Program-made: the position numbers and the translations under genes
In this document: positions 34,662-39,812 of the stretch, one piece after another
How positions within the stretch are numbered: position 1 is the first letter of the stretch
Layout of the letters: each line of letters starts with the position of its first letter
From: Macrostomum hystrix
Taxonomy: Eukaryota; Animalia; Platyhelminthes
Assembly: GCA_950097015.1 (NCBI GenBank)
Contig: CATNEN010000007.1
Span: forward strand, 12,090,001 to 12,154,000
Direction: 5' to 3'
DNA length: 64,000 bases
The notes under the pieces: model-generated
The model's database searches: none
Seen by the model: only the letters and a program-made list of their open reading frames with translations
Told to the model about the DNA's origin: nothing

Positions 34662-34709
<48 letters not shown>

Positions 34710-34722
34710 CTTCTTCTTCTTC
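34602..34722. repeat. (CTG/CAG)n microsatellite plus (GAA)n LINE tail
   Basis: ~35 imperfect CTG triplets followed by (CTT)5 adjoining the LINE 3' UTR. Confidence 0.95.
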
Positions 34723-34771
34723 TGAATCCACCGTCCCCAAAGCTGCTACAGGCAGCGAGGAGGAGGAGCGC

Positions 34772-37700
34772 TCAGAGGCGCCCCAGTCTACGCAGGAGGG
34801 CGAGGACTTGTTCAGGGTGTAAATGCAGGGCCTCGTCCCAGTTGTCGTAGCGAACACGGGTACCGTCGCCGCGCGGGCACTCGAAGAGAATGTGCTCTTC
34901 AGTATCGAGATTGCCACAGTCGCGGCAGAGCGGGTCGTCAGTGAGGCCGAGACGATGGCGGGTGGAATTGGCCAGCATCGAGCATCCCGCCCTGAGCTGG
35001 TTGATGGCGACCGTCTCGGTGCGGCTGAGGTGTTTGGGGGTGGAGCGCCAGCACGGCCCCAGCACCTCGAGGTCAAGGGCGGCTCTCGCCCGGCGAAGGG
35101 CCGCCTTAGCAGCTTGGAAAGAGATGGGCCTGTCCTGCTGTCGTTCCAGACGGGCGCGATTAGCGTAGCGGTCGGCCAACTCATTTCCCGGGATGTCGCA
35201 GTGCGCCGGGACCCAAACAAACTCGCAGCTGTGTTGAAAGGCGCTCAGCGTTGCCCAGCAAAGGCTGCCATCAGCCGAGCGCTGCTCGCAGGGGCCGTGC
35301 TCAAGGGCTGCCAGCGCCGCCAGCGAGTCGCTATGGATGCGGATCGACGTCCCGTGGTCCGGCGTCAGCTGTCTGATGTAATCGAGGGCCGCCCGTATCG
35401 CGCATATCTCCGCCTGGAAGGAGCAAGCAACCCGGCCGGCAGGGGCGGCAATAATGGTACCCCACCTGCGGGTGTTGATAACGGCGGCGCCCCAGGCATC
35501 CGAGGTGCCGTCCCTGACGGAGCCGTCGGTCCAGACGTCGATGTCCGTCGGTTGGAGATCGGCAAGGAAGTTCAGCGCCCGGTCGCGTCGGATGCTCGTC
35601 GGGAGATAGCGGGCGCACAAAGCGGTGAGCGCCAGGTTGAAGTGGATCCGTGGATTGTCCATCAGGCAGTTGATCTCGGGGGTCGGCGGCGGGTATGGCT
35701 CGCGTGGAAGGGCCTCAAGATGGGCGGCCTCAGTGAGCTCAAGAGCCACGCGACGCCAGCAACCTCGGAACGGACGACGATAGTCATTTAGAAGCAGAGG
35801 ATTGATGGTCGGTTCCTGGCGACGATTGGCACTTTCAAAAGCGCGATTGAGGAGCCTGCTGCGGGTGATGCGCTCTGCGGAGTCGTGGGCCGGGACGTCG
35901 TCTGGCAGGCGGAGGACGCGTTCGCGGAGGAGTGCGGCGCGCTCAAGGATCACGTGTCCAAAAGGCGATAGGTTCGCTGCGGCTAGGAGGTTCGTAGAGC
36001 GAGTGAGCTGCGGGCATCCGGTGATGATGCGCGCACAAGCGTTCTGCTGCTGCTCTATCAACAATTTGGTACTCGGCGCGGCGCTCGCTCCCCAGATGCC
36101 GCAGCCATGGTCGGCGACGGCACGGATGGTCGCCAGGTAGGCAGTGCGTAGGACATTCTGGGAGGCACCGGCCTTCCTGCTCGCGAGGCTAGCCAGGGCT
36201 CGGCGGCGTTGGCTCATGCGCTTACGGACATCAGCAGCGTGGGCCGTGAAGTTGAGTTGGCCGTCGAGAACCAAGCCAAGGAACCTGGGATTCGGGTCGA
36301 AGTTGAGAGGCTCATTGCCGAGCTGGAGCGGGACCCGGACCTTCCCATTGACCTCATTCGGAGCAAGGGTGAACGTGCAGTAGCAGCACTTGTTGGTACT
36401 TAATTCGATCTTCCAGCGGGAGCACCAGCTGGTCACAGCATCCAGAGCTGGTTGGAGAACCTCGGCACACTTGAGCAGGGATGGTTGTGTGGCCAGGAGC
36501 GCCGAATCGTCCGCGTACAGGCTTATTCCGCAGTTGGGAGATGCCTCGGTAACGTCTGTGGCAAGATCGTTGACGAAGATGTTCCAGAGGGTCGGGGCCA
36601 GCACCGACCCTTGTGGCAGACCCTCCCGAAAAGTGCGTTGGCTGCTCATGGTGCCGTTCCAGCACACCGTAGCTCTGCGATCTTCGAGGAAAGCGGCCGT
36701 CCAGCTGATCGTGTTAGCATCAATGCCGAGCCGGACCATCTTGTAGGTCAGGGCCTCTTTCCAGACAGATTCGTACGCGCTCTTGAAATCCTGGCAGCTG
36801 AGGATGCTCCGGAAGGCCGGGGAGCGCTCGAGGCCGTCAAAAATGTCTTGGCAGACACGCGCCAGTTGTTCCTCCGAGCTACGTCCGCGGCGGAACCCAG
36901 CTTGGGCCGGCGAGAGCAGGCCCTTAGATTCAAGTTCATGTTGCATGCGTTGTAACACCATACGCTCCGCACACTTAGCAACGCAGCTCGTGAGGGCCAC
37001 TGGCCTGTAGGAGGCCACAAGCTTCGGGTCCTTCCCCTTTTTTGCGATCGGGATGATGGTTGCCAGCCGCCAGCTGCGCGGACATTGCTTGTTAGTCCAG
37101 GTAGCATTGATTAGGTCGAGTAAACGTTGGTCGAACCGGGTGCTGAGCCGCTTGAGCATCTCATTGTGGATGCCGTCAGGACCTGGGCTCTTGCCTGATT
37201 TTAGGCGACGGATGGCAGCGTGGAGTTCAGCCATGGAGAAAGGGACAGCAGTGGTTACCGGGTTCTTGCGGGCCATCTTAGCGACATCCCGGACGGGAGC
37301 GTCCGTCTTGCGGCGGCGCACTCTGGCGACGGAGGCATAGTGCTGGCAAAAGGTGTCCGCTTTTTCTTTGTCGGTACGGGCTGGGCGAAGGTCCGACCCA
37401 TCCGGCGCAGTGCGGGCGATGTCCACCTTGCCGCGCTGTGGTGCCCTGTCGCCTCGCGTGGCGCGGAGAAATTGGAAGAGGTCGCTGCCGACGGTGAGGT
37501 GTTGTGCCCGGTCTTCGAGGTACTCGCGGCGTTCTTTGCGGATGGTGTTTCCCGCCTCGTGTCTGGCCCGGTTGTAGTCGGCTAAGCTCTGAGGATTTGG
37601 CATGGCTTCGGCTTCTTTCCGCTTCTGGTTGCAGTTGTCTCGGGCTTTTTCGCAGTTGGAGTTCCAGAAAGGTGGCCTGTGGTTCGAAGGACTGCCGCGG

Positions 37701-39099
37701 GGCATCGCGAGGGCCGCTGCTTCAAGGATGTCACTGCAAAACGCGGCGTGTCGCTGCTCGATGCTGCCCCAGGCTTGCGGGCCCTGGAGTTCATCGAGGT
37801 GCTGCTGGAAGGCGGTCCATTGGGCTTTGCGAAAGCTCCAGCGGGTACGGCGGCGGGTGTCACGGCATTGGCGTAACCGTGTCAGCGGGAACGTGATTGG
37901 CAGGTGGTCGCTGCCCATATCACGCTCCGTCCTCCAGCCGTTGGCGATGTTCGCTGCCAGGCACTCACTGGCGAGCGTCAGGTCCGGGGAGCTGCGGAAG
38001 CCGCTGCTTGGGCTGCTGCGGGTGTGTGCGGCACCATTGCAAATTTGGAGGTGGTTAGCAGAGCACCAGTGTTCGATCGAGTGGCCCCTCTCGTCCCCAT
38101 CGACCCAGCCGTCCCAGCTGCCATGGCCGTTGAAGTCCCCTCCGATCACCGTGGTGTCATTCGTTGGGAGGAGTGCGAGGTTCGGTGTCCAATTGTCGTG
38201 GCGCTGGGCACTCGCAGGCGGCGCGTAAACGTTGACAATTTAGACTGGCGCGCGGCCTTCGGGGTGGATGGTGATAGCAGCAGCGTCCAGTTTGTCCTGG
38301 TCTTGTGGAATAGACGGAAGGTTGCTGTACCGAACGTCGAGGCGCACCAGGGTGATGACTCCGCCCCTGCCGGTCGTCTTTTTTGTTTCTTGGTGTTAAC
38401 GGCCGGGGGCGACGCCGTCCTATTGCGCCCCAACGCATCACTGAGCTTGGCCCCGTCTGGCGGTTGAATTTGCGCCTGTGGGAGCGGGTTGTCCCGCTCG
38501 GAGCAAGCGGTGCGGCGGGAGCGACAGCCTCGGCACCAGTTGCTACGGTCGTCTGGGAACCGGAGGCGACACGTAGGTCTGGCCACAAGCCTTCCAGCAA
38601 CGCGCATCGACGGTCCGCCGGTATCGTTGGAGGTGCCCGGCTGGTCGTCAGCCGTGCGTGGTTGAGCACCATCCAGACGCGGCTGGGCATCCTGGTTAAC
38701 ACTTTCAGCGTCGTTGAGGTACGGGATCCCGTCGACCCGAGCGGCGACGCAGTAGTTCGCGGGAGGGGTGAAATCCTCGTCCTTGACCAGCTTTGTCTCC
38801 TGGATCAGGGCGACGGCCGGGCGGTGTGTCGCGAGCCAATGACTCAGCTCCGTCATGCGGGCCTTCAGTCCGTTAGAATTGAACTGAAGAGCGCGGAGCT
38901 CTTGAGTCGGCTCTGCTTGAGACCTCCGGTCGCGCCCTCTGCGCTTGCGTGCTGACCGACGGGTCCTTGGACGCTTGGCGCTGGGGTTGGCGTTGGCGTT
39001 GCCTCCACGGAGACGCAGCACTTGTAGCAGTTCACTATCGATGTCGGAGTCTGCGCAGACTCGGTGGTTGGGGAGACCGTTAGTCCTCTCCAGGGGCAC
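34772..39099 (-). pseudogene. LINE polyprotein ORF with two lesions
   Basis: Track ORFs 38146-39099 and 34772-38149 join into one ~1440-codon frame if one A is added to the A6 run at 38379-38384 and the TAA at 38242-38240 is read through (..GRAPV*IVNVYAPP..). Confidence 0.85.
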
Positions 39100-39125
39100 G
39101 TCGTGGACGTCGTCTCCTAGCCCCC
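39072..39125 (-). ncRNA. HDV-like self-cleaving ribozyme (minimal, P4-less) at LINE 5' end
   Basis: GGGGGC UA GGAGACG ACG UCCACGA CGU GCCCCU GG AGAGGA CUAA CG GUCUCC. This maps to P1 (6 bp, G-U at the cleavage site), P2, P3, L3 UCCnCG, P1.1 CC/GG and J4/2 CUAA with the catalytic C. G1 coincides with the element boundary. Confidence 0.8.
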
Positions 39126-39181
39126 GCTGCTGCTACTGCTACTGCTGCTGCTGCTGCTAATGCTGTTACTGCTGCTACTGC
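39126..39181. repeat. Imperfect (CTG)n microsatellite flanking LINE 5' end
   Basis: GCTGCTGCTACTGCTACTGCTGCTG... Confidence 0.9.
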
Positions 39182-39498
39182 CTATCTCCGCAGTGCTAAT
39201 GCAGCAGTGTCATAACATCGCTCATACAAAGAGACAGGCCGGCAAGGCAAGACCTTGCAACAACGACCTGCATGACAGACGTCAAGGTAGCACATAACGT
39301 CCCGTCAGTGTAGCTGCTCGGAGGTTGAATACAGGAGGGCCAGCACCGACGAGTTCTGTTGGTCAGAGGCTTGCTTGCAATGAGACAGAGTGCCCAGGAA
39401 GATTAAAGGGAAGCTTTAGTGGTAGTTAAAATGTGGGGGCTTCGCCCCGCCACGGCTTCCTCCTATCTCTGCTGTGTTAATCATTCCCGATGCGAACA

Positions 39499-39812
39499 GA
39501 TAGGCCGGCCTCTCTGCCTATCCCTGCAGTGTAAACCCCACCCCAGTGCAAAGAGATAGGCAGGCCTCTCTGCCTATCCCTGCAGTGTAAACCCCACCCC
39601 AGTGCAAAGAGATAGGCAGGCCTCTCTGCCTATCCCTGCAGTGTAAACCCCACCCCAGTGCAAAGAGATAGGCCGGCCTCTCTGCCTATCCCTGCAGTGT
39701 AAACCCCACCCCAGTGCAAAGAGATAGGCCGGCCTCTCTGCCTATCCCTGCAGTGTTAACCCCACCCCAGTGCAAAGAGATGGGCCGGCCTCTCTGCCTA
39801 TCCCTGCAGTGT
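39499..39812. repeat. 56-bp minisatellite, ~5.5 copies, each with an internal hairpin
   Basis: GATAGGCMGGCCTCTCTGCCTATC CCTGCAGTGTAAACCCCACCCCAGTGCAAAGA; GATAGGC pairs with GCCTATC. Confidence 0.93.

Follow-up and report, generated by a model that had tools for sequence, protein, structure and literature searches.

What sets the amino terminus of a protein whose reading frame opens without a start codon? The question is raised by a long interspersed nuclear element (LINE) in the flatworm Macrostomum hystrix, on the minus strand of a stretch of 64,000 nucleotides (nt) that we call the window (assembly GCA_950097015.1, contig CATNEN010000007.1, positions 12,090,001 to 12,154,000 of the forward strand; coordinates below are window positions). 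The element starts with a predicted hepatitis delta virus (HDV)-like ribozyme, its single open reading frame (ORF) runs through that ribozyme, and the leader at its start ends in the last seven residues of ubiquitin, ahead of the endonuclease domain. Comparison with related elements shows a conserved mimic of the ubiquitin tail in the slot of the 2A peptide, in a clade of ribozyme-headed LINEs, and we propose that this tail may be a site at which the leader is removed.

A ubiquitin tail is conserved ahead of the LINE endonuclease

The 5' part of the element and its flank hold the following features:

39126..39185, minus strand: 5' flank, an imperfect (CAG)n microsatellite; translated in the frame of the element, it gives poly-Q and TAG stops
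39072..39125, minus strand: predicted HDV-like ribozyme of 54 nt, without P4, at the exact 5' end; its helices covary with those of families B, C and D
39001..39123, minus strand: AUG-less leader of 41 codons (GLGDD...VLRLRGG), open from the element's start
39001..39030, minus strand: mimic of the ubiquitin C-terminal tail, LLQVLRLRGG (ubiquitin 67-76), in which VLRLRGG is ubiquitin exactly
38899..39000, minus strand: linker after GG with a basic patch resembling a nuclear localization signal (NANANPSAKRPRTRRSARKRRGRDRRSQAEPTQE; AKRPRTRRSARKRRGRDRR); a basic patch also follows 2A in relatives

VLRLRGG occupies 39021-39001 with the codons GTG CTG CGT CTC CGT GGA GGC. No stop interrupts the frame from 39123 (element nt 3) back to and including the first base, 39125, and the earliest in-frame ATG (38856-38854) lies within the endonuclease, after FNSNG. 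A preliminary description of this DNA had already placed VLRLRGG, the open frame, the first ATG at 38856 and the basic patch, and the window sequence agrees with it on all four.

Using the leader and the amino terminus of the APE endonuclease from the window element (family A) as the query, a genome-wide search of M. hystrix recovered six further diverged LINE families, B to G, that are 37-45% identical to family A over leader and APE. The tail stands at the same place, before a basic patch and APE, in all seven M. hystrix families and in one family of M. lignano, with the consensus [L/I]xxV[L/M]R[L/I/F]RGG:

Family B: a ten-residue run identical to ubiquitin, then E
Family C: DLYTVMRIRGG, then D
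Family D: NLHQVLRLRGG, then H
Family E: ELNLVMRLRGG, then D
Family F: NIHEVLRLRGG, then A
Family G: KLHNVMRFRGG, then D
M. lignano, the eighth family (PAA56246.1): NLHRVLRLRGG, then D

In an alignment of six families V39, R41, R43, G44 and G45 are invariant, the upstream leader cannot be aligned, and the downstream stretch is merely basic in general. Synonymous sites at the tail are saturated: in ubiquitin numbering, R74 is written with all six Arg codons, and G75 and G76 with three Gly codons each. Selection therefore acts on the peptide and not on the RNA, and the ubiquitin tail is, as judged from these codons, under strong selection at the amino-acid level. Its recurrence at one place in all these families is far beyond chance. 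The preliminary description had let its reading depend on conservation of the tail among family members; with V, R, R, G and G invariant over seven to eight families and the synonymous sites saturated, that dependence has been answered in its favor.

The positions kept are ubiquitin 67, 68 (in most families), 70 and 71-76, and position 69 varies freely. In ubiquitin, H68, V70 and L71 to G76 form the surface that faces deubiquitinases, L69 is a core residue and L67 is buried. The pattern of kept positions in the tail fits recognition by an enzyme rather than folding.

Could the tail lack a function, as the leftover of a captured ubiquitin fragment, or match ubiquitin by chance? A lone 7-mer in one family could arise by chance in a 220-Mb genome, and a faint collinear similarity to ubiquitin 50-64 in an old subfamily (p 0.013) hints at capture. 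Set against this are the five invariant residues across seven to eight families, their saturated synonymous sites and their unalignable flanks. Moreover, the motif is altered in decayed copies (VLRLPGG in L008, VRRLRGG in L051, VMRLRGR in L057), which display the appearance of neutral decay. We give next to no credence to a relic or a coincidence, which the pattern of conservation already contradicts.

Beyond M. hystrix the motif appears in M. lignano only, among the best 150 matches of an exhaustive profile search; word-index searches returned no external homologues of the leader.

The tail occupies the 2A slot of related LINEs

Several single-ORF APE-type LINEs (L1Tc/Ingi, Ingi-1_AC, CR1, L2, Rex1) carry a 2A (StopGo) peptide and share the layout seen here, namely a short unconserved leader, the device, often a basic patch and then APE, with no ORF1 (PMC3708506). 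In single-ORF LINEs, 2A sits 40-80 amino acids (aa) from the amino terminus (PMC3708506, PMC3894237). The GG of the ubiquitin tail lies 38-69 aa from the element start or the first Met and 30-35 aa ahead of APE, which is the position range of LINE 2A peptides. Heras 2006 is said, beside Odon 2013, to describe 2A in the N-terminal region of such elements. Unlike the 2A LINEs, families A to G lack the D[V/I]ExNPGP motif in their leaders, and a ubiquitin tail would need a protease in place of ribosome skipping.

The preliminary description had proposed that a ubiquitin tail stands here in place of 2A, and the closest relatives bear this out by carrying 2A in the same slot. Canonical D[V/I]ExNPGP lies upstream of APE in 29 of the 150 nearest proteins from a library of 1.8 billion, several with a basic patch directly after it. 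M. hystrix itself holds 31 exact matches to a 2A DNA pattern, whereas the reversed control has 0, and at least 10 of these 31 are directly 5' of weaker APE matches from the genome search. Three sister LINEs (L064-L066; C39:17.51 Mb, C39:4.71 Mb and C38:28.02 Mb) have an AUG-less upstream open frame and a leader ending in LLLSGDIESNPGP followed by PRGGERRPEQQQVKRALNILQLNLNG; that is, the leader closes with the canonical 2A SGDIESNPGP, PRGGE comes next, and APE (LNILQLNLNG) begins about 20 aa on.

Since the slot is that of 2A, the motif might itself act on the ribosome: it would be a StopGo or stalling peptide of a new type, possibly descended from the 2A that it displaced, and would resemble ubiquitin only incidentally. 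The PRGGE that follows NPGP in the 2A-bearing sister LINE of M. hystrix does resemble the RGGE of family B. However, there is no NPGP here and no Pro after GG, both of which 2A skipping requires (PMC3708506), and the ten-residue identity of family B, together with a tail profile that matches ubiquitin only, is hard to call incidental. An action on the ribosome strikes us as distinctly improbable.

The nearest precedent for the whole arrangement is Pr77 of L1Tc/ingi, an HDV-like ribozyme coupled to an N-terminal 2A (PMC4035085, PMC6765202). There too the ribozyme occupies the first nt of a single-ORF LINE of APE, reverse transcriptase (RT) plus RNase H, and a device separating off the leader follows. 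Unlike Pr77, the window ribozyme is 54 nt long, has no P4 and forms part of the ORF; as separator there is a ubiquitin tail, and as host a flatworm. Ubiquitin goes unmentioned in two papers on LINE 2A (PMC3708506, PMC3894237), and our literature search returned no publication that combines LRLRGG with retrotransposons or ribozyme with ubiquitin tail, so that the combination is apparently undescribed; the preliminary description likewise knew of no account of it.

The likeness is confined to the end of ubiquitin

How much of ubiquitin is present? Aligned with the host's own ubiquitin (hhalign), the tail profile covers residues 63-76 (92.5% probability, E 4.9e-7), and against all sequences of the PDB its best 60 matches are all ubiquitin, at residues 64-76. 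The leader had been described at first as resembling the C-terminal third of ubiquitin. That claim survives for the last 13-14 residues (ubiquitin 63-76 by hhalign) and fails for the rest, which is without the fold. We rejected homology beyond residues 63-76, as Pfam was silent and leaders stripped of their last 7 residues matched ubiquitin no better than shuffles (p 0.31-0.96), the old subfamily L007 excepted (p 0.013). Comparison of codons with host ubiquitin does not separate an origin of the tail by capture of ubiquitin from one by conversion of a 2A region.

In ubiquitin-fusion precursors (polyubiquitin, Ub-L40, Ub-S27a) and in the ubiquitin inserts of cytopathic pestivirus genomes, all processed by host deubiquitinases, ...LRLRGG is likewise fused to the amino terminus of another protein with a residue other than Pro next, and in Ub-S27a, as in the window element, a basic stretch follows GG. 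The LINE families share with such precursors a V[L/M]R[L/I/F]RGG peptide-bonded to a downstream protein with non-Pro next, and they lack a complete beta-grasp domain: the precursors contain the whole 76-residue fold, whereas the LINE leader has just the last ~10-14 residues.

This shortfall bears on whether the tail is cut at all. It could be an uncut mimic that binds an enzyme or reader, either recruiting or occupying a deubiquitinase so as to protect the LINE protein from degradation, or docking to ubiquitin-binding machinery. Such a mimic explains the conservation and the ubiquitin-specific match equally well, and without the fold efficient hydrolysis is doubtful, whereas a deubiquitinase could conceivably bind an extended tail in its cleft. 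Yet it leaves unexplained why the tail occupies precisely the 2A slot, with an unconserved leader before it and a basic patch after it, and why the upstream leader is free to vary or to lose its AUG; non-Pro after GG throughout fits a scissile bond. We consider an uncut mimic unlikely, though it deserves to be kept in mind.

A predicted HDV-like ribozyme begins at the first base

The element starts at 39125, with the first bases GGGGGCTAGG / GGGGGCTAGGAG on the minus strand, and is headed by a predicted HDV-like ribozyme whose cleavage site is the element's first base. In family A, P1 is GGGGGC/GCCCCU with a G.U at the cleavage site, P2 is GGAGAC/GUCUCC, P3 is ACG/CGU, L3 is UCCACGA, P1.1 is CC/GG and J4/2 is GACUAACG; the same bases (39072..39125) double as coding sequence for leader residues 1-18. 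A complete HDV-like nested double pseudoknot, in the order P1-P2-P3-L3-P3'-P1'-P1.1-(P4)-J4/2-P2', begins at nt 1 in families A to D:

Family A: 54 nt, without P4
Family B: 71 nt, with P4
Family C: 54 nt, without P4
Family D: 105 nt, with P4 and a 41-nt J1/2

Both minimal HDV-like ribozymes and ones with a large J1/2 are known (10.1101/2023.06.13.544163; PMC4908430).

The helices covary across these four families; the folds and covariation come from a descriptor parse with no formal statistic, because MAFFT put family D's P1 and the 3' halves in the wrong place. Pair 5 of P1 is G-C, A-U or G.U. P2 exists in four unrelated complementary versions (GGAGAC/GUCUCC, GGAGCA/UGCUCU, ACGGCC/GGCCGU, UGGGAC/GUCCCG), P3 in four variants (ACG/CGU, CCG/CGG, ACC/GGU, GCG/CGC), and P1.1 is CC/GG or UC/GA. 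J4/2 retains AC(U/G)AA and holds the catalytic C (C-N-R-A) before P2', in GACUAACG (A), GACUAAU (B), CUCUAACG (C) and GACGAAGU (D). The pair closing P1 at the cleavage site is G1.U in A, B and C and G1-C in D, and copies with unrelated flanks begin at G1. Family B matches the CPEB3_ribozyme model at 22 bits (E 0.09), below the cut-off of 35. The HDV-like ribozyme that the preliminary description had read at the element start is therefore upheld, as a 54-nt P4-less fold at the exact 5' end with P1, P2, P3 and P1.1 covarying across A to D and a weak match to a known model in family B.

Families E and F (L052, L053, L056, L057, L062; L069:4760-5400) keep an HDV-like core of a covarying P2 (GUGAC/GUCAC vs GCGAC/GUCGC), L3 UCCACGA, P4 and J4/2, with a 5' end GGGACC that has no complementary P1 strand. 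One family E copy lies directly behind a family A tail, head-to-tail, with extra Gs at its 5' side.

Loss of the start codon is derived and tolerated

The first base, 39125, is common to four other copies with unrelated flanks, and a fifth copy lacks the first 5 nt. Because the 5' end is the same in copies with unrelated flanks, the window family has no ORF1 or AUG upstream. The AUG-less ORF of the preliminary description thus stands for the window family, whose first ATG is at 38856, and does not extend to the clade. An in-frame AUG within J4/2 (AUGAC[U/G]AA, Met-Thr-Asn/Lys) is kept in families B and F, an older subfamily of A and the M. lignano element, and family D has one at the boundary of J1/2 and P2. 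It is gone from families A (AGG), C and E by independent losses, and A and E still include copies with long open frames. The AUG-less state of the leader is, on this distribution, derived and tolerated, and specific to families A, C and E.

Since the AUG was lost in A, C and E, yet long open frames persist in copies of A (97-100% identical) and E, a start codon of the element's own is dispensable and a device for trimming would be useful. The pattern argues for translation of the leader that is independent of a fixed start, and hence for the use of a trimming site. Without an AUG, translation of the family A leader must start unconventionally. A role like that of an internal ribosome entry site (IRES) has been proposed for the HDV-like ribozymes of R2 and L1Tc (PMC6765202), and both also process co-transcripts (PMC4035085, PMC6765202).

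A candidate release site for a ubiquitin-tail protease

These observations suggest how the element could define both ends of its expression. Cleavage by the ribozyme at the first base would fix the 5' end of the transposition RNA, whatever the carrier transcript. The ribozyme and the next ~70 nt would be read as a poorly conserved 'junk' leader, whose translation could begin on the ribozyme fold in the manner of an IRES, at a codon other than AUG, or in upstream sequence. The cut after GG would fall to a protease recognizing the tail, most likely a deubiquitinase of the host, and would free a uniform protein starting at the basic patch and endonuclease, which is the job of co-translational 2A in the closest related LINEs. 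We give an even chance to this proposal, that the tail is an endoproteolytic release site for a protease recognizing the ubiquitin tail and serves to remove the leader of a ribozyme-headed LINE.

Several points weigh against it. The main objection is that the USP, UCH and OTU enzymes grip the body of ubiquitin, which is absent here; peptides ending in LRGG are very poor deubiquitinase substrates, and in the split-ubiquitin system the C-terminal half of ubiquitin alone stays uncut. PF00240, the Pfam model of ubiquitin, matched none of the leaders at E<=10, giving no sign of a ubiquitin fold, and the leaders, 38-69 aa long, cannot be aligned between families. The ribozyme falls below every gathering threshold in an Rfam scan of the window, with no match at E<=1, and in families E and F no partner for the 5' strand of P1 was found at the 5' end and no parse was obtained, so that ribozyme processing is not clade-wide. 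The window copy itself is dead: its frame shifts by 1 nt near 38378 and runs into an in-frame stop at 38242-38240. The contigs of four small public sequencing runs leave 38940-39187, and with it the 5' end of the element, uncovered.

The protease could also be encoded by the element, as in viral polyproteins, where LRLRGG-like or LXGG sites are cut by the virus's own papain-like or OTU deubiquitinase-type proteases. The resemblance is real in that a bare peptide like the ubiquitin tail, with no ubiquitin body, is there a cleavage site. Unlike those viral polyproteins, this LINE shows no sign of such a protease: on its 1479-aa ORF Pfam recognizes APE, RT and RNase H alone, with no OTU, ULP, UCH, USP or papain-like domain, and the remaining stretches of the ORF are the usual LINE linkers. 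A protease of the element's own appears to us very improbable.

The residue after GG is never Pro; it is N, E, D, H, D, A and D in families A to G and D in the M. lignano protein P0006. These residues are mostly destabilizing in the Arg/N-degron pathway, although the families are related and we claim no statistic. Given such residues, cleavage after GG might also give the released protein a short half-life.

Cleavage of the tail, if it occurs, would make this the first retrotransposon shown to enlist host ubiquitin processing in defining the amino terminus of its protein, and a bare ubiquitin tail of ~10 residues without the fold could be a physiological cleavage signal. Assumptions about what cellular deubiquitinases need in a substrate would have to change, or an unrecognized tail-specific protease would be indicated. 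Two unrelated devices, 2A and ubiquitin tail, have become fixed at a shared position in sister lineages within a single genome, a natural experiment on why single-ORF LINEs need N-terminal separation at all. A short protease-dependent alternative to 2A could serve in co-expression.

The remainder of the element

Downstream of the linker the element consists of:

37895..38898, minus strand: APE endonuclease domain, broken in the window copy
38503..38571, minus strand: Cys-rich insertion within APE (CRLRFPDDRSNWCRGCRSRRTAC; C-x11-C-x2-C-x6-C), with invariant C189, C201, C204 and C211
36347..37042, minus strand: reverse transcriptase domain (PF00078, E 2.8e-32)
35153..35545, minus strand: RNase H domain (PF00075, E 7.5e-10)
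34877..34927, minus strand: C-terminal CCHC zinc knuckle (CRDCGNLDTEEHILFEC)
34707..34774, minus strand: stop codon (34774-34772), short 3' untranslated region and an (AAG)5 tail that closes the element, after which the target (CAG)n resumes

The window element, from 39125 to about 34707 on the minus strand, is a non-LTR (long terminal repeat) retrotransposon of the APE type that bears RNase H and has a single ORF, in the order APE-RT-RNase H-CCHC; the domains, the CCHC knuckle and the repeat tail are all present, and elements of this kind in M. hystrix make target duplications. Five further copies are 97-100% identical to it, some with open frames of 1412-1499 aa.

The Cys-rich insertion in APE (RPRCRLRWP..WCxGCRSGRxAC; alignment columns ~200-225) is invariant in six of six families and recurs in the distant relatives P0001, P0009 and P0010. 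It may be a zinc knuckle that aids recognition of the CAG target.

Integration beside CAG repeats and a possible route through host expression

Tails of these elements are (AAG)n or (AAAG)n, and insertions lie in one orientation beside CAG/CAA repeats (3' ends L067, L070 and L072; junctions L001-L062), with 10-nt target duplications starting right after CAG/CAA in three copies. In their repeat tails, one-orientation integration and 10-nt target duplications they resemble other microsatellite-targeting LINEs; in contrast to those, the target here is CAG, and 10 nt separate the junction from a CAG codon, which puts the poly-Q phase in frame with the ORF. As the duplication follows CAG/CAA and is 10 nt long, the 5' junction lies 10 nt (1 mod 3) after a CAG codon. 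At 15 of 17 CAG/CAA-rich 5' junctions the repeat is read as poly-Q in the ORF frame, a phase that follows mechanically from a nick after CAG and a 10-nt duplication and so counts as one event, not 15.

We rejected in-frame insertion into intact host ORFs as a general route of translation. Upstream of the elements, the ORF frame stays open no longer than the other two (medians of 37 vs 33 and 27 codons) and is the longest in 8 of 19 cases, and in several copies a stop lies 1-2 codons before the element begins; for both reasons host read-through cannot be the general rule. Individual cases exist: in the M. lignano models PAA56246.1 and PAA91395.1 (P0006/P0152) a host exon of C2H2 zinc fingers and poly-Q is fused in frame to LINE leader, ubiquitin tail and APE, and a paralogue or allele, PAA93933.1 (P0151), is the empty site (..QQQQQQSLMQQRSPHEC).

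The spliced leader (SL) of M. lignano ends in AUG (...UUGCAUG) (PMC8629364). In M. hystrix we found 19 exact copies of the 3' end of the spliced leader with its donor (CAATTTATTGCATG followed by GTAAG), spaced ~11.6-11.7 kb apart (C15:9.7-33 kb, C17:2.7-121 kb, C42:14-74 kb), which are probably an SL RNA gene within a larger tandem unit. A nick right after CAG/CAA with a fixed 10-nt stagger places the end of the upstream CAG on a codon boundary of the LINE ORF, and, since the spliced leader ends in AUG, trans-splicing onto this in-phase CAG acceptor could, speculatively, supply an in-frame start codon. The element might then be liberated twice from host expression: a start would come from the trans-spliced AUG or from read-through of a poly-Q exon, in phase by virtue of the fixed stagger, the ubiquitin tail would trim the variable amino terminus of poly-Q or host origin from the protein and the ribozyme would trim the host RNA from the transposition template. 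We regard this double liberation as rather unlikely.

Minor observations

The M. hystrix genome paper leaves repeat content uncharacterized (PMC10468722), and a few features beside the elements may be recorded here. L007 (C41:615.6 kb) and L008 (C10:47 kb), both copies of the old 87% subfamily, have common flanks, and C10 and C41 each carry polyubiquitin genes; in line with a warning in the genome paper, these are probably remnants of haplotypes that were assembled separately. A match to the histone 3' stem-loop (28 bits, E 2e-4) adjoins a degenerate family G copy at L061:735-781 on the plus strand. Just upstream of the window element, at 39498-39799 on the minus strand, three adjacent weak matches to the mir-370 hairpin model (E 0.006-0.9) lie ~110 nt apart, in what looks like a tandem repeat of a hairpin-forming unit.

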